A stretch of 43,443 bases of DNA from NCBI GenBank assembly GCA_020536535.1, contig JAHLWZ010000444.1, positions 1 to 43,443 on the forward strand. Direction: 5' to 3'. Below are positions 1 to 26,162 of the stretch, in pieces. A program made the translations under genes and the position numbers. How positions within the stretch are numbered: position 1 is the stretch's first letter; every line of letters begins with the position of its first letter. A model generated the notes under the pieces. The model had not been told where the DNA came from and ran no database searches. It saw nothing but the letters and a program-made list of their open reading frames with translations. The stretch is from Pelomyxa schiedti. Its lineage: Eukaryota; Protista; Evosea.

Positions 1-452
1 CCAACTTTTTTCTCCTGTTCCTCCGTTGAGCATTGCACAGGCACCATCAGGCGGTCAACAACTTCCAAACACCTGTACTTGATCATTCTGTTGAGAGCTA
101 CATGTGGAGTGTCGGTATTGCTCTGGTTATCCGTTAACCCCCTGAAACGTTCTTTTTTTTTGTATGTGTGGCCATTGGCTCGTCGACACCCCTCACTACA
201 AGAGTAAGAGTGGCACCATGCCACATACCCACAAATAGGTATGGTTGGTTATCCCTGCGTGTCAGAGGTTCAGACTCAGCCGTGGCACCACACTCACTTT
301 CTTGAGAGAACAATAATAAAACAATTGTCACTGTTCTGCCCCAACCGCCATGTGATTCAGACCTCTTAAGAGGTTTTTGGTTCAAGGAGAGGCGCTGTCT
401 TGGGCCATTAGATTAATTTGGAATCTTTCTGGTGGTCCCAGTCCTTGGCCAT

Positions 453-3400
453 TCAATTGATGGTGAGGGATTGGTTCTGGCCAGAAAACTGGAACACGTG
501 AGTTGTGGGCTTTGTTCCTGAGCCAGTGACCCCCTTGATCACAACAACAACCAACCCGTGGTTCCCATCAAACGGTCGGGCGTGGGTTGTTGGTGCCACG
601 CAACCACCGGCACCGTCGCGGTAGTGCTCGTTGTTGGTCTCGGGTGGCGTCGTGGCTTGGTTGCAGGCGGTGGCGCGTTGGCCACACACGGTGCGTGAGC
701 TGATCACACACACAACACACCCACCAGCTCCCACAACCCCCCCACTGACACTGCTGCTCGTTGTGGGCGCCACGACGAACCCGCTCCCTCCCCCTCCCCC
801 ACTGTCACCCTTGCCCTCAATGTACGTGTGTCCACCAGCACCCCCAAACAGTCCCCCACCCCCTCCTCCTCCACCGCATTCATTCGCGCCTGTGGGTGCG
901 TTGAGACCGTCACCACCGCGGAACTTGCCACCACACTGCGGGGAGTTGTCACCCCAGCCACCCGGTGCCTCCTGTGTTGCCCTCTTGCGCTGGTCCCCGT
1001 CCGCGCTCCCTGTCTCGCCTCCTCCCCCTCCCCCGTACCCGTGCGTGTCGTAGTATATTGTGGAGCCACCGCCGCCACCAGCCACGACGAAGGGCACACC
1101 CTCCACCAGCACTGCGCTGCATCCACCTCCCCCTCCCCCACTGTATTTGTAACCGTTAGCCCCACCACTGCCGCCACTGCCACCACCACCAAATGATCTC
1201 CTCGTTGGTGATGTTCCATATGGGTTGTACACCATACCAGCACCACCCTGGCCCACCACGATGGTGAGTTGTGTGCCAGGCTTGACCAGCATCCTGGCTG
1301 TGCTGAACCCCCCTGGGCCACCCGCCATGTTGTGAGAGTTGTTTGCGCCGCCAGCGGCACCCCATGCAAACACCTCAACCTCCCTCGTTGGTGGGAGTGG
1401 AGGGACAGTGGCACGCTGTGTTGGCTCAGATGATCCAACGAGGCTCACTGCACAAACACCAACACTCACCTCGTTATTGGAGTCCACAGTCACATCACAC
1501 TTGGTTGTCTCCCTCCCCTTCACCTCAATCACCATTCTTCCTTCTGCTGATGAAGAAGCAGTTGAGGGGGAGACAATCACGTTGTAGCCCACAACTTGTT
1601 CGAGTGAGGTCTCATTGAGGAGGGGAGAAGGTTGGTCCCACTGGACTGTGATTGCATCAGTGCCTGATGACCTGGAGCACAGAGGGGCCCTCCCCTCACT
1701 TGGGGTGTTTGGCACCCTCCCTTTGGCCAATGTTCCAAACCCCCTGATCATCCCAATCACCTCGTCACGTGGCCCACTCCTGCACGTGACCGCCTTGGCT
1801 TGTTCGCATGGTTCAAGTCTGTGTGTGTCCTGTGTGAAAGGAGGGAGAGAACACCATGAACTCACGTGAAACGGTGGGAAAGAATAGCACACCAGGAGCA
1901 ACGGTTTGTTCAAGAGGAAGGAAGAGAGGATCGAGCGTGCTTGAAGCACTTCCAGAGGTTGCTGCTGTTGCTGTTGGGCCACTTCGTTTGCCTTGGATAT
2001 CAGAGCTCGGTGGTTCTTCACAACGGCTTCCAACGAGTTGCACTGAACTCCCAGGTTGTGTGCTGTGAGAATTCCATGTTAAAACTTTTTTTGGGATTTT
2101 CTTGTTGTTTGCTGTTGTTGGTTTTGGTGGGAGGGGAAAATGAGAACTCATTGCATCAGAGAGTGACTGTGACATTTCGTTGATCTCCTTGCACCTTGTC
2201 TCAACTGCGCCCAGAATCAACTGCAAATCGGCCAGAATTAACATGCAACCCTCAGTTATCACCTGTGGTTTTTTGTTTGCACACATAACCAGTCACAATT
2301 ATGGAGCAAAGAGGTTGGGAAAAGAAAAAGGGATGAATTTGACCTTGGGAACTGACAACATCCCTGTGTTGACTTTAGAAATGGCCTCCACTTCTTTTTC
2401 GGCAATGTCATTGAGCTCCTTACTGAGTCCTTTTTTTTTTGTTGGATCACATCCTTAAACGCAATGACTGAGGTGAGTGAAAACACACGTTCCAGTTCAG
2501 AGACCTGTTGAGAAACGCTGTCAACCAATGGCACACTGGTATGGCCAGAGTGCTTCTCTGTTTTCTCACATAAATAACAGATTGGCACACCACACGAGCA
2601 TAGCAAATCTCGTTCCTTTGTTGCATGATGAGGACACATTGTTGTCGCAAAGCCCTTTTTCACTGTCCCTTGTGGAATTTCTGTTGCCTGATTGGCAAAC
2701 AAATATTAGTTCATAAAAAGAGTGAAAAGACCACCTGGTGGGCTCTGTAGGCACCCCTTTGGTGGTGCTGCCTGAAACAAGGTCCACAAAAAAGCGTTCC
2801 GTGGCAGGAGGAACATTGGCACGTGGCAGGGGACGGCGAACTCGTGGGTTCCTCACAACAATATTGGGCCTCACACAATGTCGATTTGGTCTGTTTTTTT
2901 CCAAGGTCATTGGGGTCGGAACAAAAATGGACTGTGGAATACACACCAATTCAGCTTTCTTGCTCTCGACAAGGGACATTGCCACGGTGTTTAGTTTCAA
3001 GTTGTCACCTGACATAGCTGTCCTGGTTGTCCTAGTGCACCGGAACGGGCACTTGATTTCGACTAGTGGTTTTTGTAGTAGTGTTCTTATCAGTTCAGTA
3101 CGCAAAGCAAAGAACAGGCACAGAGATTACAGAGTAGAGCAGAAAAGCCGATGTGTGTGTGTGATGGGATACGACATCGATAGTGCCACGAGCAACACAC
3201 ACCAGTTGCATCGGGTGAGCAGCAACCCCATCGACACCCAGACGACGACGACGACGAGGAGGTGCCACAAGACAATGCAGCGGTTGACTGGGGTGCGCTC
3301 GTCTGGCCTGGCCCCGGCATCGCGCCAACTCCACCACCACAGCCACCGCCACCGTGCGCGTGTGGCTTCGTGGTAGCCGTGGTTGGGAACACAGACACCG

Positions 3401-3566
3401 TGGGCAGTGCGGCGAGCCTGGCGGCGGCCACGAGTGTGGTGAGGGCGCAGCAGCGGCAGACGGTGTGGCCGCATTCTAGGTACACTGGATCGCGGTACAT
3501 ATCCATGCACACCCCGCACACAACGCCGTCACCATCGACACACACACCACGCGCGTCGGAGGACAT
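453..3566 (-). CDS. TRIM-like E3 ligase, copy 1: RING - B-box1 - B-box2 - coiled coil - FN3 - glycine-rich (ALK/LTK-type polyGly) domain; about 8 exons
   Basis: Manual splicing joins the listed ORFs in frame. RING CGVC..LECGHTVCRCC..(insert)..VEIKCPFRC (intron 3202-3063). B-box1 CEAQYC..CSSCHGTLFCGPCFRQHHQRGAYRAH. B-box2 CPHHATKERDLLCSCGVPICYLCEKTEKHSGH. Coiled coil RLSKELNDIAEKE (intron 2488-2430). FN3 ITVQWDQP..VVGYNVIV. Gly-rich domain VEVFAWGAAGG..LTIVVGQGG..VVAGGGGG..GNHGLVVVV. Confidence 0.85.
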
Positions 3567-3836
3567 CAGGGAATAAAAAAAAAACAGCGGCCAGAGCCCA
3601 AGTTGGAGGGACGCCTTTTTTCCTGTTTCTGTATACTTCTCTGGGTTGGTTGAAGCTCTAAGTAGTATGATGGTTAGTATGGGAGGTGGTTGCGAAGTGT
3701 TTGCGAGGTGACAGAGGGGGGACTTTCTCCCATTTCTGAGCAGATTTGTACAAAAAAACTTGGAGACGGGCAGACAGGCACTGCCGCATCAGGAGCACGC
3801 GCAAGAGTCCCTGACTGTTGCACCTCGACGACCGAC
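3567..3836. promoter_or_regulatory. Putative bidirectional promoter, TRIM copy 1 / SAM copy 1
   Basis: Divergent ATGs at 3566 (-) and 3837 (+), 270 bp apart. The arrangement is conserved in copy 2 (9748 / 10020). Confidence 0.5.
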
Positions 3837-4442
3837 ATGTCCAGCACCACCACGCCCACCACGTCGTCTTCATCGCCATCATCATCGTCCAGCAGTAACA
3901 CTACGGCCACGGCCACGGCCACGGCGACCGCCACGCCGACGTGCGGCAGAGAAGTTGCTCCAGTGCCGCCATCCCCCCCAAATTGGACGAACCGCCACGT
4001 GTGCGCTTGGCTCACACAACTTGGTGTTGCCAAGCACGTCCGCGTGTTCGCTGTGCGCCGTCTTTCCCCACTCTTTTTACATACTCTACAGAACGTTGGT
4101 TGCGCACAGAACGGAGTTATGGGGGTGAATTGGCCTCTAATTTTGTTTGTTTGTTTTGTTGTAGGTTACCAAAGTTAATGGGAGAGAGCTTCTTAGCATG
4201 TCACAGGAGCAACTAGAAGCACCACCTTATTCACTCCCTGCTGAATTAGCGGCGAAAATCGTGGATTCGTTGACAACACAATGTGGTAGGTTAGCCATTC
4301 TGTAAATTCTGAGCTTTGTAATGTGTCTAACTCTGAGTTCACTCTGCAGCAAGTGTTGTATCAGACATATTCGATACGCTTCTTGCTAGCACAGAGCAAG
4401 CCGACGATGATGACATCTTCACACCACTCTATGAACTGAGTG
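3837..4442 (+). CDS. SAM-domain protein, 5' part (duplicate of the SAM-RapGAP N-terminus), cut off by the assembly gap
   Basis: Spliced WTNRHVCAWLTQLGVAKHVRVFA|VTKVNGRELLSMSQEQLEAPPYSLP is a typical SAM motif. The protein is identical to copy 2 up to the N-run. Confidence 0.75.
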
Positions 4443-4542
4443 NNNNNNNNNNNNNNNNNNNNNNNNNNNNNNNNNNNNNNNNNNNNNNNNNNNNNNNNNN
4501 NNNNNNNNNNNNNNNNNNNNNNNNNNNNNNNNNNNNNNNNNN
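4443..4542. other. Scaffold gap (100 N)
   Basis: Run of exactly 100 N, the usual placeholder for a gap of unknown size. Confidence 0.99.
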
Positions 4543-4753
4543 TATCTTCTTGTCTTGATTTATTGCTGCTATCTTGCTGGCATTTTCACATTTCCCTAAA
4601 TATGCTTTACCTGTGTATGCAGTGCCTTTCTCTGTTTGTGCCTCCGATTCATTGCATTCAGGTCGTCCATATTTTAACTGCTTGTGTGAGTTGCTCTTTA
4701 TGTTGGTGAGGCAGTGCAAAATCTTTGTACACTGTTGTCATTTTGCTGGCATG

Positions 4754-5900
4754 CTATGCTGACATTGGCATCTCACTGTGCACAGATTCCCATGTGCGCC
4801 TCAGATCTGCAAGAACTCGGTCACCTGCGAAAAAAAGCGCTCTGAGAATGTGTCACGGCGGCTGGGGGTCACTGACTTTGACCGGCGGGGCGCCAGAGGG
4901 ACGCCCACGGTTCTGCTGTGGTGGGCATCGAGAAGGGATGCTGCATGGCCAAAGGGTTCATTGGGTAATTTGGTACTTTTCCAGAGTAGGGCACATTGGG
5001 GTATTCCTCTGTGGTACTGTTTTGTGTTGTTCCAAAATGTACTGGGTTTTTTAATTCTCCTTTTTTTTTTGTTCCCTTAGGTGTGGGTGTGAGGTGTGGG
5101 TAACGGCAGAGCACTGCAGACAACAAGAGTGCCAGTAAGAGCGAGCATGCTGGGTGTGTGGGTACTGGCACTGGTGGTAGGAGTGAGGAAGCAGTAGGGA
5201 GGCCAAGTCCAGCCACAGTATGCCACACCATCCACACCTGCAAAATGGAGTTAGCAGGGTTGGAAAGAAGAACAACAAGGTACCTTGATATTGCTGTGTT
5301 ATTGTTCCGCTGTGGCTCCATCATTCCGGTTATCTGTAAGCATGTTAGAAGAGCCAATGATGGTTAAAGACATACCAAATCCCAAGTCCCTGAGGAACAA
5401 TTCCGGAACGGTTTCAGCTTCAGTCTGTGGAAAACGTTAGAGGAAGAGAATGACAAGACAAAGGGGCCAACCTAACATCTAGTCAGCAAGCAGCAGCGGC
5501 CCCGACTGAAGTCTGCTTTGGAATCAGGGCAGTGCATCATCGTTCTGGGGTCTGGCTGGCGTGTTAGCGTGACCAAGGAAGCATATGGCGGGGAACAAAC
5601 CGAATTCCAAGTCAGTGCAGAACAATTTCCAAAGGTGTCGGCTTAAGTCTGTGGAAAACGTGAGAGGAAGAAAGAGGAAAGACAATGGGACCTACCCAAC
5701 TTCCCAGTCAGTGTGGAGTGAGTGTAAGTTGGGGAACGCGGCAGAGTGGAGCGTAGGAGCCCAGTGAGCAGGAGTGTAGGTGTGCAAGAGCAAAGCAAGG
5801 GGTGTTGGTTCCAAAGTGAAGTGGGTGAATGGCGGGTAAAGCCTGACATTGCACTCCATTAGTAAGTGACATCCATTGTCGCTGTTGTTGTTGAGTGGTG
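4754..5900 (-). pseudogene. Uncharacterised spliced gene or pseudogene
   Basis: Several good minus-strand splice sites, e.g. CTAAC..CTTACAG at ~5334, and GTCAGT..TTTTTCGCAG giving a terminal exon DRVLADLRRTWESVHSEMPMSA*. No single continuous frame or domain could be established. Confidence 0.3.
5376..5695 (-). repeat. Two diverged copies of a 47-nt intron + 48/49-nt exon module (5376-5471 and 5601-5695)
   Basis: Both read GT..TTCCTCT(A/C)ACGTTTTCCACAG, then an alignable exon (ACTGAAGCTG..GACTTGGGATTTG vs ACTTAAGCCG..GACTTGGAATTCG), then GTATGT or GTTTGT. Confidence 0.7.
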
Positions 5901-6622
5901 GGAACAAAAGGGAGAGGGAATGTACCCTGGTGATAGATTGTCAGCAGGTCCGCCACCTGAATAACATATGTGAGCTGCAGGGTGGAAAAAAAAAAAGAAG
6001 GCACATACCAGTGTCACTGTTGGAAATGCAGAAAGGGGCTGTGGTGTGCAACACTGGGGCCTGGGGTGGTTGAGTGGGGTGACGATACAAAGGAGAGGGG
6101 ATTTACCGTGAAGATGACTCTCAGCAGTCGACAAGTTGCAAAACCACCTGGTTAGAAAGGGTGAGAACTCAAAAAAGAAACAAGAGAAGATACCTGTATC
6201 TTTGGTTGGTTCAAAAGAAAATAAGACGATAACAACCACACAACAATCGTTGTCCATGTGCACTTATGTTGGTCCAGGCACCCCTGACACGTTGGGTTTT
6301 TTGATTTTTTATTTTTTCTTGTTGATTGTTCTACCGGAAATTCCCGACAATCGTTTCTGATTCTGTGACTTAGGCCTGCCTGCTTCAAGCACAACATACT
6401 CAAAATTGAGGAGCTCAACTTTGGGTGTCTTCTAAGGTGCAACACGTTCTGAATATATTGCTGTTAGGAACCACCTCACATGTTGTCACGCAGTTTTGTA
6501 TTTTACCCCAAGTCCCACCATGTGATTCAGACCTCTTAAGCTGTGTGGTTTTTGGTTCAAGGAGAGGCACTGGGTCATTAGATTAATTTGGAATCTTTCT
6601 GGTAGTCCCAGTCCTTGGCAAT

Positions 6623-9600
6623 TCAATTGATGGTGAGGGATTGGTTCTGGCCAGTTAACTTGAACACGTGAGTTGTGGGCTTTGTTCCTGAGCCAGTGAC
6701 CCCCTTGACCACAACAACAACCAACCCGTTGTTCCCATCAAACGGGTGGTCGTGGTTGGTTGGTGCCACGCAACCACCGGCACCGTCGCGGTAGTGCTCG
6801 TTGTTGGTCTCGGGTGGCGTCGTGGCTGTGTTGCATGCGGTGGCACGTTGGCCACACACGGTGCGTGAGCTGATCACACTCACAACGCACCCACCAGCAC
6901 CCACAACCCCCCCACTGACACTGCTGCTCGTTGTGGTTGTGGGCGCCACGACGAACCCGCTCCCTCCCCCTCCCCCACTGCCACCCTTGCCCCCACCGTT
7001 GTACGTGTGTCCACCAGCACCCCCAAACAGTCCCCCACCCCCTCCTCCTCCACCGCATTCACTCGCGCCTGTGTGTGCATTGAGACCGTCACCACCGCGG
7101 AACTTGTCACCGCACTGTGGGGAGTTGTCACCCCAGCCACCCGGTGCCTCCTGTGTTGCTCTCTTGCGCTGGTCCCCGTCCGCACTCCCTGTCTCGCCCC
7201 CTCCCCCTCCCCCGTACCCTTGCGTGGAGTGGTATATTGCTGAGCCACCACCGCCACCAGCCACGACGAGGGGCACACCCCCCACCATCACCGCACTGCA
7301 TCCACCTCCCCCTCCCCCACTGTATTTGAAACTCACACCACCACCACTGCCGCCACTCCCGCCACCACCAAATGATCTCCTCGTTGGTGTTGTTCCATTT
7401 GGGTTGTAGACCAGCCCAGCACCACCCTGGCCCACCACGATGGTGAGTTGTGTGCCAGGCTTGACCAGCATCCTGGCTGTGCTGAACCCCCCTGGGCCAC
7501 CCGCCATGTTGTGGGAGTTGTTTGCGCCGCCAGCAGCACCCCATGCAAACACCTCAACCTCCCTCGTCGGTGTTGGTGGGAGTGGAGGGACAGTGGCACG
7601 CTGTGTTGGCTCAGACGATCCAACGAGGCTCACTGCACAAACACCAACACTCACCTCGTTATTGGAGTCCACAGTTACATTACACTTGGTTGTCTCCCTT
7701 CCCTTCACCTCAATCACCGTTCTTCCTTCTGTTGATGAAGAAGCAGAATCAGTCGAATTTGAGGGGGAGACAATCACGTTGTAGCCCACAACTTGTTCGA
7801 GTGAGGTCTCATTGAGGAGGGGAGGAGGTTGGTCCCACTGGACTGTGATTGCACCATCAGTGCCTGATGACCTGGAGCACCGAGGGGCCCTCCCCTCACT
7901 TGGAGTGTTTGGCACCATCCCTTTGGCCACTGTTCCAAACCCCCTGATCATCCCAATCACCTCGTCACGTGATCCACTCCTGCACATGACCGCCTTGGCT
8001 TGTTCACATGGTTCAAGTCTGTGTGTGTCCTGTGTGAAAGGGAGAGAACACCATTAACTCACGTGAAACGGTGGGAAAGAATAACACACCAGGAGCAACC
8101 GTTTGTCCAAGAGGAAGGAAGAGAGGATCGAGCGTGCTTGAAGCACTTCCAGAGGTTGCTGCTGCCGGGCAACTTCGTTTGCCTTGGATATCAGAGCTCG
8201 GTGGTTCTTCACAAGGGCTTCCAACGAGTTGCACTGAACTCCCAGGTTGTGTGCTGTGAGGAATTACATGTTAAACCTTTTTTTTGGGATTTTCTTGTTG
8301 TTTGCTTTTATTGGTTTTAGTGGATGGGAGGGGAAAATGAGAACTCATTGCATCAGAGAGTGACTGTGACATTTCGTTGATCTCTTTGCACCTGATCTCA
8401 ACTGCACCCATAATCAACTGCAAATCGGCAAGAATTGACACGCAACCCTCAGTTATCACCTGTATTTTTTTGTTTGCACACATAACCAGTCACAATTATG
8501 GAACAAGAGGTTGGAAAAGAAAAAGGGATGAATTTGACCTTAGGAACTGACGATATCCCTGTGCTGACTTTAGAAATGGCCTCCACTTCTTTTTCGGCAA
8601 TGTCATTGAGCTCCTTGCTGAGTCCTTTTTTTTTGTTGGATTACATCCTTAAACGCAATGACTGAGGTGAGTGAAAACACACGTTCCAGTTTAGAGACCT
8701 GTTGAGAAATGCTGTCACCCAATGGCACACTGGTGTGGCCAGAGTGCTTCTCTGTTTTCTCACACAAATAACAGATTGGCACACCACACGAGCATAGCAA
8801 ATCTCGTTCCTTTGTTGCATGATGAGGACATATTGTTGTCGCAAAGCCCTTTTTCACTGCCCCTTGTGGAATTTCTGTTGCCTGATTGGCAAACAATATT
8901 AACATATTATATCTAACATGAAAAAAGAGTGAAAAGACCACCTGGTGGGCTCTGTAGGCACCCCTTTGGTGGTGCTGCCTGAAACAAGGTCCACAAAAAA
9001 TCGTTCCGTGGCACGAGGAACATTTGCACGTGGCAGGGGACGGCGAACTCGTGGGTTCCTCACAACAATATTGGGCCTCACACAATGTCGATTTGGTCTG
9101 TTTTTTCCAAGGTCATTGGGGTGCAGAACAAAAATGGAATACACACCAATTCAGCTTTCGTTTTCTCGACAAGGGACATTGCCACGGTGTTTGGTTTCAA
9201 GTTGTCACCTGATATTGCTGTCCTGGTTGTCCTAGTGCACCGGAATGGGCACTTGATTTCGACTAGTGGTTTTTGTATTAGTGTTCTTATCAGTTCAGCA
9301 CGCAAAGCGAAGAACAGGAACAGAGATGGCAGGGTAGAGCATAAAAGCCGATGTAGGTGCGTGATGGGGGACGACATTGACAGTGCAACGAGCAACACAC
9401 ACCGGTTGCGTCGGGTGAGCAGCAACCCCATTGACACCCAGACGACGACGCAGAGGATGCCGAGGTTGACTGGGGTGCGTTTGTCTTCCCCGGCATCGCT
9501 CCAACTGCGCCACCACAGCCACCACCACCACCGTGCGCGTGTGGCTTCGTGGTCGCCTTAGTCGAGAACACAGACACAGTGGGCAGCGCGGCGAGCCTGG

Positions 9601-9748
9601 CGGCGGCCACGAGTGTGGTGAGGGCGCAGCAGCGGCATACGGTGTGGCCGCATTCTAGGTACACTGGGTCGCGGTACATATCCATGCACGCCCTGCACAC
9701 AACGCCGTCACCACCGTCAACACACTCACCACGCGCGTCGGAGGCCAT
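6623..9748 (-). CDS. TRIM-like E3 ligase, copy 2: RING - B-box1 - B-box2 - coiled coil - FN3 - glycine-rich domain
   Basis: Same exon structure and motifs as 453-3566 (ORFs 9290-9748, 8603-9085, 8271-8483, 6623-7987). Length differences that are not multiples of 3 fall in the inferred introns checked. Confidence 0.85.
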
Positions 9749-10019
9749 CGGGGGTGAAAAAAAACAGCGGAGCCCAAGTTGGTGGGGACAGTCATTGTTT
9801 CTGGGTGTCTGTTGACATCTCTGGGTTTTTTGAACCTCTAGGTAGTATCATGGTTAGTATGGGGGGTGTCTGCCAGCCGCCCGAGGCACAACAGCGATCT
9901 ACTAGTCTTCCTCCCCTTTCTGGGCAGATTCGTACAAAAACTTGGAGACGGGCAGACAGGCACTGCCACACCAGGAGCACGCGCACAGAGTCCCTGACTG
10001 TTGCACCTAGACGACCGAC

Positions 10020-12847
10020 ATGTCCAGCACCACCACGCCCACCACGTCGTCTTCATCGCCATCATCATCGTCCAGCAGTAACACCACAGCCACGGCCACG
10101 GCCACGGCGACCGCCACGCCGACGTGCGGCAGGGAAGTTGCTCCAGTGCCGCCATCCCCCCCAAATTGGACGAACCGCCACGTGTGCGCTTGGCTCACAC
10201 AACTTGGTGTTGCCAAGCACGTCCGCGTGTTCGCTGTGCGCCATCTTTCTCCACTCTTTTTACATACTCTACAGAACGTTGCGCACAGAACGCGGAGTTA
10301 TGGGGGTGAATTAGCCTCTAATTTTGTTTGTTTGTTTGTTTGTTTTGTTTGTTTTGTTTGTTTGTTTGTTTTGTTGTGTAGGTTACCAAAGTTAATGGGA
10401 GAGAGCTTCTTAGCATGTCACAGGAGCAACTAGAAGCACCACCTTATTCACTCCCTGCTGAATTAGCGGCAAAAATCGTGGACTCGTTGACAACACAATG
10501 TGGTAGGTTAGCCATTCTGTAAATTCTGAGCTTTGTACTTTGTGTCTAACTCTGAGTTCACTCTGCAGCAAGTGTTGTATCAGACATATTCGATACGCTT
10601 CTTGCTAGCACAGAGCAAGCCGACGATGATGACATCTTCACACCACTCTATGAACTGAGTGATAGTGATGACGATATGCTTGCATTACACGCTGGGCTGC
10701 CGCCTTCTGCAACTCCCTCTAGCTCTTCATCCACAACTCCGCCGTCAAGCAAAAGGCCACCATCAGCTTCACTCAATCCAACAACGCCAGCTCAGCCTAC
10801 GACTCAGCAATGGCGTCATGTGGATGCGTGCCGATCACCTACATCTGGAAGGCGATTTTCCCTTGTTAATACTCCCATTCAAACATTTTTTCCAAATCCT
10901 TAATCTATTACAGAGGGATAACTCCCCTAGACCAGAAGGGTTGAAGGTACCTCCTTGCGAAAATCACTCATCTCTAAATGTTGGCAGACATCACGAGAAC
11001 TGTGCAAGATGACAGGACCACAACCTCCAAAAGAGTAACGCAGCTCAAATTCTGTTACATTCTTACCCCTCGTACGTAGATATGTCCACCACATGCCTTC
11101 ATTGATCAAGTTCATCCATAATATGGATGGAGCATCTTGGGATCATAATACCATTGACTACTGGAGTTCAATGCACAGTCCTGTGGCTTCATGGGTGGTA
11201 CTCATCAAACTTGAAACAAGTTACCCCGTTCAATTTTCTAAAGGCAAATGCTACTGTTGATGTACTAACTAATGGGATGCCACTCATTGACCCGAAAGTG
11301 AAAACCTTCAACTTTAATCTGGAGTTGGGCAGAAATTCTGTTTCAAATTGCTCTCGCATAGACCCAAGCATGCTTGTGGAGGCCCATCTTGACTGCAAAT
11401 TTTATGCCGAATTTCTTGCGCCATCATGTTGGCTCCCTGATCCCACTCTTAATGTTAATATGCTGTGCTTTCGTAGCACACAAGACATATGTTGGACAAC
11501 AAGGTGACTGTCCTTATGTCATTACATTCGAAATTCCGGTTTCCAAAGATAACAGTTGTAAAAAAGCCTTCATACGCACAAAACATGTATGTGTACTTCA
11601 TCCCCTCGTTATAACTGTTACATTGTAGGAAGATAAACGTGTTCTGGTTCAAGCTAATGAGCGACCTAGAAATCTCATACCACAACTTTTAGTAACTCAT
11701 TTTAATGCACAGTACTAAGTTATCTAAATAAAGAAAAAACTCATGCCTCAGTAGTGATATTCAGTTCGTGAAAGTCGTCGATCCTAATCTTCCCCATGAA
11801 CTGGTGGAATTTGAATCACGAAACACAGTCCGAGCATACAAGTTTGGACTTCTGTACTGCACACCATTCCAGCATGTTGAGGATGAGATATACAGCAACT
11901 GCAGTACTTCTCCACAATATGAAGAATTCTTGAGGTTCCTAGGGAACGGGGAGCCAATTAACTTAAAAGGCTGGAACAAATTTCGAGGGGGTCTTGATGT
12001 AAAAAGTAAGTTTTCTGAGAACTACCTCAAATAACGAGTCCACAACAGATAACGTGTCTGGTGAACAGTCTGTTTATACAGAATTCCGAGGATACGAGAT
12101 TATGTTTCATGTTCTCCACATTGCATTTAAAAAAAAATCTAATGCACTTTCTAGGTTGCTACAATGTTACCTTTTGTTGACACCGACAGACAGAGAGTAA
12201 AAAAGCAACATAATATAAGTACGTCTAACACAATATTCGGCATAGATCGAACGGAAAAGACATGTCGGGAATGATGTGGTACCCTTTCCAATACCTTCTG
12301 TTTGAGTACTGATAAGGAATTAAGGTTGTCATCATATTCAAAGAACGAGGCGACGACATGGACTGCTTCAATCCAAAGATTCTCGCATCCCATTTTAATC
12401 GTAATTGCACCTCCTGTGATGCCACCATGTAACAAATCCACAGATTGCTTCTTTGTCATTCAAGCTGAAACAGATGCACAAGGAAGAACAACTCACTACA
12501 GGTTGTGAACAACAAACAAATGTGCCGGAATGTTCTTACAACTACTACAGATTATCAATTGGAAATAAGGAAGGTGTACCACCGTACCCTCCCTTCCTTC
12601 CAAGTCCCCCAATATTCGAAAAGAACTCAGACTTCCGGGACTTTTTACTTCTAAAACGTTCGTCAATTCCTCCCCTACTCACTTCCACAAAAAATCACTG
12701 ATCCCACAAAAAAAAGTAATCAATGCTGAACGAGCAGCCATGAATGCACGAGAATTCAAAGCAAAAATTGAGAAGGCAAGAAGGGTACTACTACAACAGA
12801 TAGTCAATAAGTACACAACAAAACCCACAAAACCCACAAAAACTTGA
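10020..12847 (+). CDS. SAM domain + Rap/Ran-GAP domain protein, multi-exon
   Basis: N-terminal SAM. RapGAP motifs YKFGLLYC..YEEFLRFLG..LKGWNKFRGGLDVK, YEIMFHVATMLP, IERKRHVGNDVVVIIF (catalytic Asn intact) and FRDFLLLKLINAERAA. Stop TGA at 12845-12847. Confidence 0.9.
10322..10378. repeat. Imperfect (GTTT)n microsatellite in SAM gene intron 1
   Basis: Expanded relative to the equivalent intron in copy 1 (~4141-4160). Confidence 0.8.
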
Positions 12848-12944
12848 GTAAAGTAGTTGTGGATTTTTGGACTTGTATATTTTCTTTTTTGTTTCACTCC
12901 TTGTATCTTCACAGGGGTGTTGTGTGGTTTGATAGGTCTAAAGC

Positions 12945-14096: not shown

Positions 14097-14263
14097 CTTC
14101 GTATTTTTATTTTTTAAGTCTCAAAAAAAAACACGAAATCTGTATTGCTCTCCTTTTATTTTTCAAAGCACGATCTTGGCCCAAGTGGGCACACCTCAGG
14201 TGCCAAACCAAGTGGTTTGGGTGAACCTTGTTTGCTTGAAGGGTAGTGGTGGTGCCGCTGGTG

Positions 14264-17200: not shown

Positions 17201-18373
17201 ACCAACTTGATAAATCTCAGACATTTAATTTGAAGCCATGGGTTAGGCACGTCGTGATAAAGATAGTCTCTTGAATACTCCTTCAATACTGTCTGAATAC
17301 AAATCAGTATCCCAAGTGGAAGAGAAACACAAAGCACTGAGAACCTTATGAAGAATTCGAAGAATTTTTGGAGTTGCAGCTTCGAAACTTGTTGTGTCAG
17401 TTTGAGCAATGACAGATAGCAAAGAAACCACACTGTTAACAACCCCAAGGTCAAGATCTTGAGGTGTATCAAAAGGGTGAAAAACCCAAAATTAAAGAAA
17501 TCTCACCGTCCAACATTGTCATAAGCTTTGCGTATATATTTGAATCAACTTGCAAAACGTTGTTATCTTTGCGGTAGAGTCGCAGAAGGCACATAGCTGC
17601 CTTCTTACGTACTGTGCTGGGAGTAGTTCTAGGACACGTTAAAAGGTCTAGCTAGTGTGACAGGAGTACGTTGATAGTAGCAGGTTTAGGATGGTAGGAG
17701 CCAGTGACTCAGTCATTTCCTTCCCCCCAATGGTGGCAATTGTAACAAGGGCAAGAGAGGTACTGAACTCACCCCTTGCCTAATGTAATAAACACAGGGA
17801 AATAAAACGGCATTAAAAATACCTGTAGGTCTTCTGCCAAAGAGTTGATAATGAGGGGTAACATTTCATGGTTTTCATTCAATAAAAGAGACATAGCAAG
17901 ATAACCCTGGGGAAAAAAGTCAAGAGAAGAAAAGCAAAGAAAGAACAAGCCATTGCTAAATTTCCTACCATTTGTTTTTCATGGAATTTAGTGCTGGACA
18001 AAAGTGTTACAGCCTCCATGTGCCCAAAGTCAAGTTCATAACCAAGCATGTACATGTACAATAACTTTGACACGTACTTACGCCGTGCATAGCCATCAAT
18101 GGTCTTTGCTTCCTACGATATGGCAGTTTGTAATTATGGGGGTGTTGCACATGTTGAGTGAGGATGCCCGTACCCTGAATTCCTTTCTGATTTTAGCCAA
18201 CTCTTTATCAACTCGTTTCTTTTCAAGCTCTTGGCTTGGAGCTATTTGTGATGATTTACAATTTACCACCACCGTGCAGAAGGAGGAAGAAAAAAAAAAC
18301 CATTGTGGATCGAGGAGATGAAGTTGTGCAACCCCCTCATGAAATCCTTTGCTATCCCCGCTGATGCAGCCAT
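14264..18373 (-). CDS. AP2A: AP-2 complex subunit alpha (alpha-adaptin), many exons
   Basis: [22 protein letters not shown]; [25 protein letters not shown]; [17 protein letters not shown]; [41 protein letters not shown]; low-complexity hinge; appendage ending [18 protein letters not shown]. Confidence 0.95.
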
Positions 18374-18711
18374 CTTGCCGTCTGGATTTCGTTCGTTTTT
18401 TTCCGTTCCGGTTGCTTGATTGTGGTTGATCAAGGTGCCTGCAAACACTGGGACTTAGGAGGACACACTTGTAGAGCAATAGCAGGGAAGCCCTGTATTC
18501 AGTGAGCCTTGACTTCCATCAGAAGTGACCTCTATGTGAATGATGTGAATGATGTGATTGATTTGAAAGAACCCTTTTCCCCAATTGGGCGTCACCATCA
18601 AAACACCGGAACCCCGAAATTGAGCGCCGAACGTGACGTCCCCCGAAAAGCCCTTGTTACTTTTTGTTTTTTGCACCCTGGAGTAGTGGCAAATAGATTG
18701 TGGTGACTTCA
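18374..18711. promoter_or_regulatory. Putative bidirectional promoter, AP2A / ABCA
   Basis: Divergent ATGs 338 bp apart. Contains GTGACGTC and GCGTCAC and a short (ATGTGAATG)x~3 repeat at 18534-18560. Confidence 0.4.
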
Positions 18712-21700
18712 ATGACCGAAAACAACGCTTCCAGTCTTGGGGACAAGTACTGGGGTACAGATACTGGGGATGCAGGGGCTACCCAGAGTGAGACTGAGTC
18801 GTTAATGGGCGCGGAGAGTGGCTTGAAAAGGACTTATGGGAACGCCAACAGAGGCAAATATGTGTTACTCAAACAGTTGAGAGCTATGTTTTTGAAGAAT
18901 GTCACTCTGTCTGTTAGACAGAGGAAGCAACTTGCTGTTCAAATTATATGTACGATGATGCAGTAAGTTTTTTGGGAGGAATTTGGAACTGGAAAGGAAA
19001 GTAATAACCAATTCTCACATAGTGCCACTTACAATAACACTTGGCATTGGCCTGGCTGCACTGCTCAAGGGTGATGAGGAGTCACATTCCCTCAATGACT
19101 GGATGTACAAAGATATATTGTATTATCCTTCAGAGTGAGTGCTCCTCTTCCCTTGTTTCTTACTTATTTGGTTCTTAAAGTGATTATTCTTATGGAGACC
19201 ACTTCTTCTATGTCGATCCTAATGACGTTGCTGGCCACTGCTACAATGCCTCATATAATTATGACAATCCACCCCGTGTTTGTGGGGATACCCTCTATTC
19301 TGGTCTGCCCCAAACGCACTATTTGATCAGTCTTACACGTCTCAAGGAGGAATTCTTGGAACGTACTACCAGAGACCTTGGACTGAGGCATATTGGTGCG
19401 ACGATATGGACCAATACGTCACATTACACTCGTGCTCTCCGTTTTTTGAAGAGCAGAACGACTGGGATACAGCCTTGGAGGTTTTCCAACAGTATGAACT
19501 TCAAATACTCAACTTGTTTAGAAATACATGGACTTATACAAAGATGCACGCGATGCAAATAATGACTGGGATATGAGCTACTGCAAGAGTGCTCAAATTG
19601 AATTCCAAATGCCTCAATCTGGTACTTCCCATCTTCGGTCTGGAGCCGACTAACCAATGACAGCATTTTATTTTGAGGAATTGACATCAACTGAAGAAAT
19701 TTCTCTTCCTGACGTCAAGTTGCACTACCGCGTCTTTGCAACTAATCAGTATTTGGCAGTGGCGTGGAATTATGATACATATGTTGGTCTCGCTATCCTA
19801 TGTGCTTTCTCACTAATTTAAGGATCCCGTAATGATATCCATTAACAGCATTGACAGTGCTTTCCTGCGTCTGATTACCAATTATTCCTATTCTGTAGTA
19901 GTAGGAGAGACAAAAGCTTTGGATATAGTACTAGGCTTCTCGGTTGAAAAGGTGGTGTTTTAGCGCAAAACTAACCACTTACAGCATTTCCCTGAGCACT
20001 TTTACCTGGAGTCTCCGCGAGCAATAATACTTGCCTTTGAGGCAATCTTAGTTCCATTCATATTAATGTGTTTGATGCCCTTTTTTATGCAGAAGGTTTT
20101 TTCCCCCTTTTTTCCACTAACTTACTTCTCCTCCTTAGGTTGTTGTAGAACGAAATTCTGGCCTTTCTGAGATGTTAAACTTGGTAATCTCATTTTACTT
20201 TTCCTCTTCATATCTTTACATAATCAGGCTGGTCTCAACACACAAATATATTGGATTGGCAATTTTTTATGTGACTGCCTTATATACAGCATATTCCTTC
20301 TTATTCTCATTCCCCTTGGTGCTGTTCTTCAAATGAAAATATATACGGAAGTTGGGTATGTTTTCTAATCCCCTGTGCAGCAGTGTTTTCATCTCTTGTA
20401 GGATTTCCTTGTATTGCCTGATTATTAGTTGGGGGATAGCTCTTATTGGACTCTCCTATTTCTTTGCAGTTTTCGTACGAACAGCAGGTCATTTTTTTCC
20501 TCTTAGCTGGTACGTTTTGATTTGATTGCAGCACAGTCTGCTGTCGTTGGTTTTATCATCGTTTGTCTGCAACTAGCCGCGGCAGTGTTGCTAATTTATT
20601 TTGGTTGTGCCACTACAAAAATTCTCAAACTAACATCCCTGTTAAGTATATTATGACCAGGACGGCACACCTGCCTATTTCATGCTTTATCCTCCATTCG
20701 CTTTGGCATGGGGTTTCTTTGTCACTGGTCACCCTCTTTCTTCAAAGCTTGAAATGTTCGTATGCCCTGATGTATCTGTTGAGCAAACTTGGAGGGCTAC
20801 AGGGTGGGTTGCAGGGATGGGTCTGATTTTTCTTCTTGTGTCAAGGTATCATCTGAACAAAGTTGTAAAAAAAATTCATTCCCTTCTAGTTATCTTGATC
20901 AAGTCATGCCACGGGCAATTGGAATGCGGAAGCCGTTCTATTTCCCAATTACAGATTTTATCTTCTGGGTGTCACACAAACTTGGTACCAAGAAAGGCCG
21001 AAAATTTCCTGCAACAGAATTAGCATTCCAAGGAGACAAGGCCGAACTAGAACCAGAAGATGAAGATGTACGGAGGGAGAGGCACGCTGTTTACGAATTG
21101 TCTGGGGCTAGTGATTGCCCTCTTGTAATTAAGGCAATGTCAAAGACCTTTTCTGGTGGTATAGGGTTTGCTCCACTGCGTCGTTTATCTTGTGAGTGCT
21201 TACTCTTAATCAGGACTTCAAACGTTCAGGCCTTGAAAAATGTAACCTTTCACGTTGAGCCGGGTCAGTGCTTTGGGCTGCTGGGGCCAAATGGTCAGCT
21301 TTGCTCCACGTTCTTAGTTTGTATAACCATATTGAACAGGTGCTGGTAAAACTACTCTACTGAATATCCTGTGTGGTTTGATGTCTCCAACGGGGGGTAA
21401 AATTGCTAACAAAGTCTAAACATAAACTTACACTTATAGGATCTGCTGTTATTGGTGGCTGTGCTCTCGAAAATTTATCTTCTATGCGGAGAATGATTGG
21501 TCTATGCCCACAGTTCGATTGGCTATTTGACGATTTGACAACACAAGAACATCTTTTATTTTACACACGATTGAAAGGCTTCCCAATAAGAAAAGAGTCT
21601 GCCCATGTGGTACGTGTAGAAGTTACAGCATTCCGTTTTACGCTGCATCTAGGAAAGTATTATTAAGGAAGTGAGCCTCCAAAATGAACGACGGCGTCTT

Positions 21701-22474
21701 TCAAGGGACCTTAGTGGTGGTCAAAAGCGCCGGCTTTCTTTCGCTATTGCGTTAACTAACGATCCGGCCGTTGTATTCCTTGATGAACCAACAAGTGGAC
21801 TTGACCCTGGGTGTACCAGGGAACTATGGAATGTAATCACAACTGCCAGGGTGTGTATCACAGCCCTATCAAAGATCATGCAGAATTAACTTTGAAACCA
21901 CAGCAAAATCGTTGTTTCTTACTTACCACACACTCCATGGCTGAAGCGGAGACAGTGTGCACACAAATAGGAATTCTGAGCCGCGGACACCTTAAGTGTA
22001 TTGGCACTCCCCAACATCTCAAGAGCCGATTTGGGCAAGGATACAAACTCGAGGTTCTGTGTGAAAGTTCCGAGGAAGCAACCAAACAGGAAGCGCACAA
22101 TTTTGTTGCTTCCATCATAAAGGGGGAACCTCAGGTTTTGCATGGAACCACACACAGCCTCGTATTCCAAATTCCGCACACTGTGAGAGTCTCGGATATG
22201 TTCGAGGTTCTAAGCCGAGAATCCAAACACCACAGTAAGTTCCCATCCATTCCCAAACACACAAACAACAACTCCCAATCAACAGCTAATGCACAATCAA
22301 TCAGAAATCAAATCGTGGAGCGTGGGCCAGTCCAACCTGGAGGAGGTATTCATAGCCATTGTTCACCAAGACGAGGGCGAGGCAGAAACAGCTGCACCCT
22401 CAACACTTCCCATTGGTTCCATACAAGACTCCTCACTGGCTTCATCACCAACATCAACCAATGGCTCTCTGTGA
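18712..22474 (+). CDS. ABCA-family transporter, half-size (one TMD + one NBD), multi-exon
   Basis: N-terminal [16 protein letters not shown] and several TM segments. Walker A GLLGPNG|[20 protein letters not shown], signature [10 protein letters not shown], Walker [38 protein letters not shown] and C-terminal NLEEVF are all typical of ABCA. Confidence 0.9.
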
Positions 22475-22614
22475 CATTCAAGCTTCCCCCCTTTTTGTCT
22501 GTGCTGTAAACAAAGTAATAACAAATTTGCGTACTAATTGGAAATTTCGGGTTTGTATTTTGCCACTGAAATTATGCATGAAACATTTGTACCCGAGAAG
22601 GAGGAAAGAAGTGC

Positions 22615-25600
22615 TCAAGAGCTGAAAGCCTTGAGCTGGCGCAGTTCAATATAGCTGGGGTTGCCGTAGGCTCCAGAGTTCCTCACCTCAATCTTGAGGA
22701 ACTGAGTCTCAAAGTTGACCTGCCACGTGTTGCTGGCGTCCACGGTGAGCCCGCCGTCCCTGCTGTTATTCAAGTCAGCCACGTCGGCCCACCCAATGCC
22801 CCAGTCAGTCCACCCAGGCGCGTCGTGCTGCGGCGCCTGGGCTCCCCCCTTCTTGCTGTGGTACGACAGCTTGATCCTGGTGGTCTTGCCGTCCGAGCAC
22901 ATCTGGAAGAACACCACGGTCCTGACCGCCGCGGACCTCCCGATGTCCACGACCAGGATCCCGATGCCGCTGGCCGTGTTGTTGGTCCACGTGGTCCCCA
23001 CCGAGTTGGCGGCCCTGGTGCTCGTGGTCCTGCTGGTCGGCTGCGTGTCGATCAGGCAGCCGTTGGCGCACCAGGCCTCGGAGGGCCCGCCGCAGTTGCT
23101 CTTGTAGTTGCCCGCGCCGCCCGTGAAGGCGTACTGCACGACCTTGCACTGGCCGCCGGTCTGCGGGTCGTTGAGGAGGTTGGCCGTGCCGTCGTTGGCG
23201 CCGTAGTCGATGCCCTTGAGGCGCGCGATCTCGCCGCGGAGCTCCTCGATGCGGGCGCGGTGGGCCTGCGTCTCGTGCTGGGCCGCCTGCAGCTGCGCCT
23301 CGAGCGACGCGTGGTGGGCCTGCGACTCGCTGAGCTCCAGCTCCTTGGCGGCCAGCGCCGCCTGCGCGTCCTGCAGCACCGCCTCGCTCTCGGTGAGCCG
23401 CGGGAACCCGCTGGCCAGGCGGTCCAGCCCCGCCGGGGGCTCCGGGACCGCCGCGGGCGGCGCCAGCTTGGGCCGCAGCAGCGCGTAGGCGTGAAGGAAC
23501 GCGACGGCGCTGTCGGCGTCGCTGTGCCTCTCGGCTGCGGCTCTCATCACGAAGGGCGAGGAGGGGGTAGTAGTTTCAGGAGCTAGAGGCATTGGCGGAA
23601 TAATTGGGGCTGCTGAGGCACTGCGTGATGACGTTGTTGTTGTTGTTGTTGTTGTTGCTGTTGTTTGTGATGCCGATGCTGAGGCTGAGGCTGGAGGGGG
23701 GATCGTGGATATGCGGGTTATTGCAGATAGTAAGGAGAATTGGCCAAGTTTTCGTAAAGCCTTGACGGCTGAAGACATATTGCTATATGGGTGTGATTAG
23801 TTGCTTGGGATTGTGGGATTGACGAATGTGTGTGCGTACTTTAAGCTGCTAATCAAGGCGAAAATCGTCTTTTGAAACGCGGCTAGTTGTTGCAAGGCTC
23901 CAGTGAGCTGCGTTTCGGTTGTGGAAAATAGCTCTGTTACATTTATGTGCCAGGTTGTAACAATCTTGTTAAGTATACTGATGGCTTCCTGCCCTGATTG
24001 GACTGCGCTTTTTTGCAACATATTTGCTATTACTTCTGCCTGTTTATGATGTGCTTGTGCTGTAACGAGTAGTTTGCTTATGCTTTCATCTGTAGGATTT
24101 GAGGACATTTGATGAGAAAAAGCGGGGCTTAACCCTTGTCAGTAAGATCATTCAAAGCTGATGCAATTGCATCTTTCAGAAGAATGCATTCATGTTTGGC
24201 ATGAGCGCCATATATTGAACAGTGCACACAAATAAGGCATTTATCTTGCGTGCAAACCATATCAAGAACTTGATTTTGGTGGTCCTTGCACATCTTGGAG
24301 CCAATCTGTGTATGTAATTATTAGGGCCTTCAGAATTTCCATTCAACCTGAGGGACCAAATGCATAGATGCTGTATGTAGGGCAGGAACTATAGTACACA
24401 GCTGTGTACAACCCTTATCATTTGAGTGCTCTGGTAATGAATGAAGGGTATTGTAAACTTCTCCAGGAAAACTCATCAGCTGCCGCACAGTCTCCTTCAT
24501 GATAACAAACTCAGCGACTGGATGTCCATGCATGGAATGCCCCACCTACGTTGCATAATTACTACCTAACGATTTTATTAATTCTCATTCCTCCATTGCG
24601 CCAGTGGAATGCAGTCTGTTGTAAAGAACATCTAGTACTTCAGAAAGTTCATTTCTTTTTCGGAGCAATACAGTATCTGGCAGTGTCTCGGTGGCACTTT
24701 CCAGTTCTGATAGCTGGGTGCATAAAGAGTGTACTAGTGCAGAAAGGTTTTTGTGCTGTTCTGTTATGCTGCTAACATCATTTGTTAACGTGGAATGAAT
24801 AGTGCCCTAAAGATTCACAATGAAATGAGAATTGTTTGATAGTATGCACAAACTTTGATTTCCGTTATTCTGGTCGAGTCAATTGCCAGCAGTTTTTCAC
24901 AGAGTACTGTCAGAATGCTGGCAATGTATTCTTGTTTTCTTCAAGAATGTGAGGATATCTAGGTATGACTGAAGTACCTGGCAATCACTGAGGCCGAGAG
25001 GGAAAATGGCTGGGCTGCATCTGAGACAAATTTAACAACCTATAGCGGGTCAGTTGCATAAAGAGAGTTGCAAAGATAATTTTCCTCATGAACAGTACGG
25101 CATTTCTTCTGTAAATCGGTGCGGTATTGCAATGCAGCAGCCTCTATAGAAATACACCCATCATAGGGATGACTATCACATACACATATTTGGCATAGAA
25201 TTACATCATGAACTGGGCAATAAAATCGAACAAGTTCCTGCGTTTTTGGTGTTGGTATCAGAAATTAATTAACATAAGAAAGGAGAAAGATACAGATGTA
25301 TGCTTTCGGCAAAAGGTTCTTGCTGGAGGTGGGGTTCCTGGATGGAGCAAAACAACAGATCCAGAAAGGTGTCCCTTGAAACGAGGCCCACGATGCACAC
25401 GTGCATTGCATTCATCACAAAGTCGAATAGGAGGAATACAAGCATTGCAAATAACAGAAGCCCTAACAGAAGGTTCACTCGGGTGGTCCTCACACATCAA
25501 ATCAGCCATTCGCAACTCCTACGAAAATTTTAATTTATCAAAAAGATACAACAGTATAAAAAGTTAAAACTAGGAAAAGGAGAGATACGAATGACAACGC

Positions 25601-26162
25601 TATAAAAACAAACCTCTACAGCTAAGCACAATTGCTTATTTATGGTGGCACTATTTGGGTTGCATTCAGACTTACACACAGGGCATTTCAATACACTTCT
25701 GGGAATCGTGCTTGTCGTTGATCCAGCCCTGGAACTTGCCCTCAGTCCCCCTCCCCCGCTACTCATCCTCAGGCTCCGGTTGCTAGACCTCAACGCCGAG
25801 CCCGCACTGATTATGGGACCGGGTCCGCCGGGGGCCTGGTCCAAGTTGGGTCCGTCGACGACGGCGAGGCAGTAGCCGACGCAGCGCATGCACAGGGAGT
25901 GGGAGCACGGCAATGTGACGGGGTCGACGAAGAGCTCGGAGCACACGGGGCACTCCATCGTGAACTGGGGCTGCGGCGTGTGGGGATTGTGGGACTGGAG
26001 CATAAGCTGGTGGTGGAGGTGCAGCGCCGGCGCGGAGGAATTATGGGACTGGCGCAGCGGGGGCGAAGAGGGTGGGGCTTGTTGCGTCATCGGCGTCGTA
26101 GTGCCTGGAGGAGTTGAGCTGGGGACCAACGCTGAGTGCGTTTCGTTGCTTGTCGTTGACAT
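22615..26162 (-). CDS. Third TRIM-like protein: RING - B-box1 - B-box2 - coiled coil - linker - coiled coil - beta-sandwich (galactose-binding/F5-8C-like) domain
   Basis: RING CPVCSELFVDPVTLPCSHSLCMRC..CPVC. B-box1 CEDH..CNAC..LCDECNARVHRGPRFKGH. B-box2 CRKHTS|ELVRFYCPVHDVILCQICVCDSH. The 57-nt intron 23839-23783 (GTACGC..CTAAT..TAG) joins ORF 23797-24108 in frame to the 22615-23778 ORF. Exons between 24.1 and 25.1 kb are only partly resolved. Confidence 0.7.

Follow-up and report, generated by a model that had tools for sequence, protein, structure and literature searches.

Three TRIM-like loci on contig C444

Contig C444 (JAHLWZ010000444.1) of the anaerobic amoebozoan Pelomyxa schiedti, from a 52-Mb assembly, is analysed here as a complete contig of 43,443 bp, and this whole stretch is called the window. 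Three minus-strand loci in the window, each represented in the databases by a hypothetical protein (genes 1 and 2, Pelo_5493 and Pelo_5496; gene 3, Pelo_5501), carry a TRIM-type front end, in the order RING, B-box1, B-box2 and probable coiled coil, followed by a C-terminal module. The three loci are likely members of a very large, lineage-specific TRIM-like family in P. schiedti. This family is undescribed in the literature searched, and the paper on the P. schiedti genome makes no mention of ubiquitin (PMC8887013). A sequence-only reading of the same DNA had proposed TRIM-like ligases with exchangeable tails; its observations are partly confirmed and its interpretation is partly supported by the present analysis.

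Gene 1 and its paralogue gene 2 consist of the following parts.

3203-3566, minus strand: gene 1 exon 1, with the start codon, the first six RING ligands and a long low-complexity insert within the RING (Pfam RING families, E 1e-7); phase-1 GT donor
2947-3062, minus strand: gene 1 exon 2, with the last RING zinc pair (C-x3-C, not C-x2-C) and a TRIM-like post-RING helix (alignment to P0007 and P0001, splice sites)
2735-2890, minus strand: gene 1 exon 3, B-box1 (PF22586, 25.9 bits; genome-scan match C444:2732-2863; 72% identical to P0007)
2489-2687, minus strand: gene 1 exon 4, B-box2 (PF00643, 24.9 bits against a cut-off of 24.1; 58% identical to P0007)
2344-2429, 2148-2262 and 1893-2062, minus strand: gene 1 exons 5-7, coiled-coil region (alignment to P0007 residues 274-391; junctions and phases)
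453-1829, minus strand: gene 1 exon 8, with a linker, an FN3-like stretch (about 1373-1718), the ALK/LTK-type glycine-rich domain (768-1367), a C-terminal tail and the stop codon
6623-9748, minus strand: gene 2, paralogous to gene 1 with 91% identity (duplicated unit compared by blastn; Pfam, coordinate mapping, P0002)
9403-9748, 9147-9262, 8942-9097, 8683-8881, 8539-8624, 8345-8459, 8090-8253 and 6623-8029, minus strand: gene 2 exons (coordinate mapping)
6944-7546, minus strand: gene 2 glycine-rich domain (Pfam PF12810)

In genes 1 and 2, comparison of single open reading frames (ORFs) with Pfam places the RING, B-box1 (PF22586, ANCHR-like), B-box2 (PF00643) and glycine-rich domain in separate short ORFs, as the sequence-only reading had stated. 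The deposited paralogue Pelo_2647 (P0007; 878 residues), which retains all front-end parts, served as the guide for joining them. Each gene resolves into eight exons separated exclusively by GT-AG introns with consistent phases, and exon arithmetic from coordinates and phases gives 860 codons for gene 1 and 862 for gene 2. Pfam RING families match all three loci at E 1e-7 to 6e-7; of the RING, these matches cover no more than the initial 25-30 positions, with ligands one to six. Whole-protein tests were run on the deposited paralogues P0007, for the subfamily of genes 1 and 2, and P0023, for gene 3. Residues 221-336 of P0007 align to the B-box/coiled-coil chain of TRIM3 (8amr) at E 9.5e-6, which agrees with a putative coiled coil.

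Gene 3 has a more elaborate structure.

25614-26162, minus strand: gene 3 exon 1, with the start codon and a RING into which about 70 residues are inserted (Pfam RING; conserved in the paralogue; start agrees with P0023)
25294-25518 and 25094-25237, minus strand: gene 3 exons 2-3, B-box1 and B-box2, the latter spanning the intron (weak Pfam matches, 66-68% amino-acid conservation with the paralogue, splice sites)
24585-25039, minus strand: gene 3 exons 4-6, coiled coil; exon 6 ends in a TGA at 24585-24587
24348-24545, minus strand: gene 3 exon 7, a conserved linker exon
24134-24305, minus strand: gene 3 exon 8, a third B-box (PF00643, 34.6 bits in the genome scan)
22615-24089, minus strand: gene 3 exons 9-10, with a coiled coil (23840-24089), a stretch of low complexity, another coiled coil and a galactose-binding-like beta-sandwich (22618-23220)

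On contig C841, a paralogous locus colinear with gene 3 can be aligned to it in the exons only, at 72-76% DNA identity, which marks out the coding parts of gene 3. The tandem B-box is matched weakly by Pfam in the window, and the corresponding part of P0023 (residues 176-272) aligns to the tandem B-box of MID1 (2jun) at E 7e-4. The last exon gives coiled-coil-type Pfam noise. The RING, both B-boxes and the C-terminal beta-sandwich ascribed to gene 3 by the sequence-only reading are all present, together with parts that it had not listed, namely the third B-box and additional conserved exons. Introns of 39-98 nt with in-phase GT-AG ends are found at every junction of gene 3 except that between exons 6 and 7, which is considered below.

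C-terminal modules

The 'polyglycine domain' that the sequence-only reading saw at the end of genes 1 and 2 matches PF12810 (ALK_LTK_GRD) with 35.1 bits in gene 1 and 32.9 bits in gene 2, above the cut-off of 24.5. A profile made from 21 sequences (A2) matches the ectodomain structures of LTK, ALK and Caenorhabditis elegans SCD-2 (7NX0, 7NWZ, 7N00, 7LS0 and 7LIR), with E-values from 5e-13 to 5e-12; the aligned region, of about 245 positions, takes in the opening motif as well as the runs of glycine. Because of these structure matches, the polyglycine domain is identified at the sequence level as the ALK/LTK ligand-binding module. ALK and LTK are receptor kinases in which the glycine-rich/TNF-like domain lies outside the cell, is linked to a kinase and serves to bind a protein ligand. 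In genes 1 and 2, by contrast, it forms the C-terminus of a RING-B-box protein that leaves no position for a signal peptide. Since the domain sits on a protein with an N-terminal RING and without a secretion signal ahead of it, its placement suggests use inside the cell. Two other searches added little: a phmmer search of the last exon of gene 1 against the PDB returned glycine-linker noise only, and word-index protein searches with this exon and with the front end of P0007 returned the close Pelomyxa subfamily and a few metagenomic glycine-rich proteins without RING or B-box, and were little informative on other taxa.

Elsewhere in the genome, a single open frame (L007:1054-2229; C792:112870-114045) contains a TRAF-type zinc finger, recognized by eye, that runs into a PF12810 glycine-rich domain. 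The ALK/LTK-type binding module thus appears to be joined also to a second kind of ubiquitin-ligase front end.

The FN3 domain proposed for genes 1 and 2 is not confirmed, and a likeness to animal class C-I TRIMs (MID1/TRIM9 type) does not hold. No COS, FN3 or SPRY domain of Pfam matches these genes at E≤0.1, and a profile search of the PDB gives no match for the FN3-like stretch. Part of the FN3-like stretch aligns instead to the first strands of the LTK module when the profile is compared with the PDB.

The C-terminal domain of gene 3 finds no match in Pfam, F5/8C (PF00754) included, or in a word search, and in this it differs from the F5/8C discoidin domain and its kin. A large profile search retrieves 212 relatives of this domain, 127 of them at E≤1e-10, and PF00754 weakly matches 4 of 41 relatives. 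Folding from two sequences gave a predicted local distance difference test score (pLDDT) of 40; an alignment of 41 sequences was required to obtain an AlphaFold2 model of the isolated domain with pLDDT 94.4 and a predicted template modelling score of 0.90. In Foldseek and VIA-align comparisons, this model resembles galactose-binding-like jelly rolls, namely CBM32, SUN, IFT25, the discoidin domain of muskelin, APC10 (DOC) and BIRC6, with a Foldseek probability of 1.00, VIA Z-scores of 12-15 and root-mean-square deviations of 2.2-3.1 Å over 130-151 residues. A protein language-model search separately points to F5/8C (Atlas F5/8C 0.97). The beta-sandwich claimed from sequence is thus borne out by the model, which strongly supports membership of the gene 3 C-terminus, at the level of predicted fold, in the wider galactose-binding-like superfamily. 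In CBM32 and discoidin domains the ligands of this fold are sugars; in E3 ligases (APC10 and muskelin) they are substrates. No similarity between the gene 3 domain and two discoidin-like modules of Pelomyxa was detected by hhalign.

The closest relative outside Pelomyxa is a protein from a metagenome-assembled genome of Myxococcota, which has two copies of the domain (35% identity, E 9e-25) and is encoded by a gene of 71% GC. The G+C content at third codon positions (GC3) is 0.25-0.45 in the other exons of gene 3, rises to 0.97-1.00 over about 200 codons and is then 0.71-0.87 up to the stop codon. The jump is present in both paralogues (window 22618-23510 and L015:2845-3680) and spans the last coiled coil and the jelly-roll domain. 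The paralogous jelly rolls differ at 59 of 198 third positions and 35 of these differences are swaps between G and C, so that the bias has been kept despite divergence. Together with the 71% GC of the Myxococcota relative, the high GC3 is consistent with a transferred module, although the upkeep of the bias is unexplained.

In the Myxococcota metagenome contig (L036), the gene for the protein with two gene 3-type domains (6001-8760) lies near DotU and DUF4280 genes, which are associated with type VI secretion. In that bacterium, the domain may accordingly belong to a protein that is secreted or exposed at the surface.

The family across the genome

Of 309 candidate B-boxes in a genome scan, at least 150 were scored as matches. 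All of these exceed the Pfam cut-off, and they are spread over more than 100 contigs, some of which are 134-467 kb long. There are 57 matches of the B-box1 type, at least 26 of which lie 100-250 bp upstream of a B-box2, and RING motifs are found upstream of 14 of 23 sampled B-boxes. The complete architecture is present in the deposited paralogues Pelo_2647 and Pelo_12339 (972 residues). Modules downstream of B-boxes were surveyed in 20 fetched loci and by coordinate co-location. The B-boxes lie 0.7-3.5 kb upstream of these modules, on the same strand; the following counts are lower bounds.

Glycine-rich domain, same strand: at least 11
Olfactomedin, same strand: at least 10
Sel1 repeats, same strand: 5 of 20 loci
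Filamin, same strand: at least 6
F5/8C with or without FN3, same strand: at least 3 loci
NHL, same strand: 2
SPRY, same strand: at least 1 (contig C797)
No Pfam match, same strand: several

The glycine-rich domain has at least 17 PF12810 matches genome-wide, and the 11 or more counted above lie 0.7-2.2 kb downstream of the B-box. Across the genome, the TRIM-like front end recurs with a wide range of C-terminal modules that are unrelated to one another. The idea of swappable modules therefore holds, because glycine-rich, olfactomedin, Sel1, filamin, discoidin, NHL and SPRY modules are all found downstream. The description of the tails as 'non-SPRY' applies to the genes in the window but not to the genome as a whole, where at least the B-box-SPRY gene on C797 is present. 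Domain order, exon structure with its conservation and the diversity of C-terminal modules are direct observations.

A module of about 105 residues recurs at the end of RING-B-box1-B-box2-coiled-coil genes (L025:4248-4571, L026:7074-7391 and L031:7522-7911). Pfam does not match it, and hhalign detects no similarity between it and the gene 3 domain; being beta-rich in appearance, it may represent another jelly-roll family. Sel1 repeats number about 2000 candidates in the 52-Mb genome, many of them in open frames of 400-900 residues and some behind B-boxes, which amounts to a very large expansion of this repeat. Given this number, their coordinate co-location with B-boxes is uninformative.

Relation to known TRIM systems

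The solved sequences closest to the chassis are those of animal TRIM2, TRIM3, TRIM21, TRIM5, TRIM39 and TRIM72 and the tandem B-box of MID1, and the protein language-model neighbours are animal TRIM clusters, which agrees with the TRIM-like chassis proposed from sequence. Animal two-B-box TRIM (RBCC) proteins such as MID1/TRIM18, TRIM9, TRIM2/3 and TRIM45 share the order RING, B-box1, B-box2, coiled coil and variable C-terminal module, and the filamin, NHL, FN3 and SPRY tails of animal TRIM classes occur on the Pelomyxa chassis elsewhere in the genome. On the other hand, the Pelomyxa genes are amoebozoan and have a long insert in the RING, the last pair of which is C-x3-C in genes 1 and 2, while gene 3 differs by its third B-box and a second tripartite-like segment. 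Neither an ALK/LTK glycine-rich domain nor a galactose-binding-like domain joined to a TRIM chassis was found in the papers and database matches consulted.

Outside animals, only TRIM37-like Subfamily A, with a RING, one B-box and a MATH domain, has been recognized, the other subfamilies being animal-specific (Marin, 2012; PMC3503706). The Pelomyxa genes resemble this subfamily as RING-B-box proteins outside animals, but possess both B-box1 and B-box2 and no MATH domain. A single TRIM, DdTRIM, has been reported in Dictyostelium (PMC5758549), and 15 B-box proteins of Entamoeba invadens have been listed without further study. The literature searched describes no TRIM-like family beyond the TRIM37-like one in Archamoebae or other amoebae. 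The presence of at least 26 tandem B-box1-B-box2 loci in an amoebozoan recasts the question of the time and mode of origin of the TRIM system, as compared with the distribution given by Marin (2012). The amoebozoan tails mix animal-like modules (filamin, NHL, SPRY and FN3) with new ones (ALK-type glycine-rich, olfactomedin, Sel1 and jelly-roll).

As every known protein close to the chassis comes from animals and the culture is polyxenic and polyeukaryotic (PMC8887013), the TRIM-like genes might derive from a contaminating animal or from a recent transfer from animals. This origin is very improbable. The B-box matches are dispersed over many contigs, some of them long; the introns of 39-98 nt are of the GT-AG type, and exon density fits the 7.4 introns per gene reported for P. 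schiedti, in which 98.4% of introns are GT-AG (PMC8887013). Identity to animal TRIMs is low, with E 1e-5 at best, and the C-terminal modules differ from those of animal TRIMs.

Gene models and the RING

Several points weigh against assignment of the three loci to a TRIM-like family with full front ends and exchangeable tails. The deposited models of genes 1 and 2, which are transcript-based, lack B-box2 entirely, one half of B-box1 and some of the coiled coil, as they jump from 2816, inside B-box1, to 2063 (gene 1 coordinates). At the junction of exons 6 and 7 of gene 3, the GT donor of the paralogue reads TG and the frame runs into the TGA at 24585-24587. The RING is atypical, with an insert of about 70-85 residues between the third and fourth zinc pairs (about 85 low-complexity residues in genes 1 and 2) and, throughout the gene 1/2 subfamily, a C-x3-C last pair. 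FN3 is unconfirmed, a comparison of the FN3-like motif with genuine FN3 by hhalign being weak (E 0.0026, probability 11%). Finally, the module survey comprises 20 loci and co-location only, so that some co-located modules could belong to neighbouring genes.

If the deposited models are right, genes 1 and 2 encode a RING, a truncated B-box1, a late coiled coil and the glycine-rich domain without B-box2, and gene 3 is two genes, one for a RING-B-box1-B-box2-coiled-coil protein ending at the TGA and the other for Pelo_5501, with B-box, coiled coil and beta-sandwich. In that case the resemblance of the proteins to TRIMs would be a loose one. These models were produced by Augustus, PASA and EVM with single-cell RNA-seq (PMC8887013), and the same skip is made in both tandem copies. 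However, the skipped exons of genes 1 and 2 are open, 58-72% identical to Pelo_2647, mostly with a ratio of nonsynonymous to synonymous substitution rates (dN/dS) below 1, and flanked by canonical in-phase GT-AG splice sites; the skip uses a donor inside B-box1 and removes half of its zinc ligands, and the paralogues Pelo_2647 and Pelo_12339 are themselves deposited with the full architecture. The loosely TRIM-like version is thus the less likely one, though a serious competitor, and Pelo_5493 and Pelo_5496 probably mis-splice across the B-box exons. Several deposited models of the family hide B-boxes.

The case of gene 3 is more delicate. The chains of genes 1 and 2 can be joined in phase, as the sequence-only reading had expected, whereas exons 6 and 7 of gene 3 could be joined in frame only through a GC donor (24599) or a GT donor 17 codons upstream (24639). 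Since the GT donor is absent, an in-frame TGA follows and the deposited Pelo_5501 starts at 24533, just downstream of the broken junction, the odds that the window copy is one gene are about even. Its paralogue is deposited as a single protein with the complete domain chain (Pelo_12339), and gene 3 was probably one gene ancestrally, of which the window copy may have split.

Given the atypical RING, ligase activity is not assured from the sequence. The RING might be degenerate and the proteins might be scaffolds or adaptors assembling through the B-boxes and the coiled coil, as the spacing of the last zinc pair, the very long insert and the shortness of the Pfam RING matches could indicate. Yet paralogues share ligands one to six as well as the post-RING helix, dN/dS is 0.30 in exon 1 of genes 1 and 2, and the best RING matches are the active RINGs of TRIM2 and TRIM21. 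Loss of ligase function is accordingly considered rather unlikely, and the TRIM-like family assignment is preferred.

Possible mechanism and role

On the model of animal TRIMs, the RING of these TRIM-like proteins would recruit a ubiquitin-charged E2, the B-boxes and the coiled coil would form a dimer or a higher-order assembly, and the C-terminal module would pick the target. The target module would be the ALK/LTK-type TNF-like/polyglycine domain in genes 1 and 2 and the galactose-binding-like jelly roll in gene 3. Both ligase activity and target selection are inferred for the Pelomyxa proteins by this analogy. The ALK/LTK ligand-binding domain is placed here on an apparently cytosolic protein, and the family offers a natural chassis-plus-binder set for testing target selection in a phagocytic, symbiont-bearing cell.

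As suggested by the sequence-only reading, the family could serve cell-autonomous surveillance, in which viruses, bacteria or endosymbionts would be recognized by the variable C-terminal modules and tagged with ubiquitin. In favour of such a role are the size of the family, its modular make-up and its local duplications, together with modules that are typical protein or sugar binders. Animal TRIMs act in this way, the same has been proposed for amoebae in reviews on Dictyostelium (PMC5758549), and P. schiedti hosts prokaryotic endosymbionts (PMC10579272). Against this, comparison of genes 1 and 2 gives dN/dS values of 0.3-0.7 for every exon but one, a coiled-coil exon of 34 codons (1.65), and among seven paralogues from the glycine-rich subfamily each region has a value of 0.27-0.48. 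These region-level values of 0.27-0.7 point to purifying selection, and large modular families also serve ordinary proteostasis and signalling. The surveillance role is a speculative and unlikely proposal at present.

Positive selection at the region level, as in an arms race, was considered as well and is rejected on the same values, to which the 34-codon exon is the sole exception.

A still broader and equally tentative picture is that P. schiedti has well over a hundred full TRIM-type ligases whose tails have repeatedly been recruited from binding domains of extracellular or bacterial type (the ALK-type polyglycine domain, olfactomedin and the Myxococcota-like jelly roll with near-100% GC3) for cytosolic recognition of bacteria, symbionts or viruses, in parallel to animal TRIM immunity. 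If such a parallel repertoire exists, the two-B-box TRIM chassis either predates animals or arose twice.

Genomic setting

Genes 1 and 2 lie in a duplicated unit (345-4442 and 6515-10661, 91-98% identity by blastn), between the coding parts of which the assembly has a gap.

4443-4542, no strand: assembly gap (Ns) between genes 1 and 2, outside all three TRIM-like coding sequences

The gap is 877 bp upstream of the start codon of gene 1 and 2 kb downstream of the stop codon of gene 2. Homology of the duplicated unit reaches the last base before the Ns, so that the gap cuts the unit mid-homology, and the 1.97 kb that follow the gap have no counterpart beyond copy 2 of the unit when sequences within the contig are compared. 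The assembly was scaffolded using RNA read pairs (PMC8887013). For these reasons, the tandem adjacency of genes 1 and 2 is uncertain and depends on a scaffolding join, although their sequences identify them as true paralogues.

A divergent plus-strand gene (3690-4442 and 10020-10661) shares the duplication of genes 1 and 2. Its beginning is rich in Thr and Ser, inspection by eye suggests the start of a SAM domain, and its first copy is truncated by the assembly gap. Gene 3 is flanked on the plus strand by an ABC-transporter-like fragment (21811-22509; recognized by eye), which is co-duplicated with gene 3 on C841, and by a gene for a TPR and glycosyltransferase-61 protein (26763-28445; PF04577, E 3e-21).

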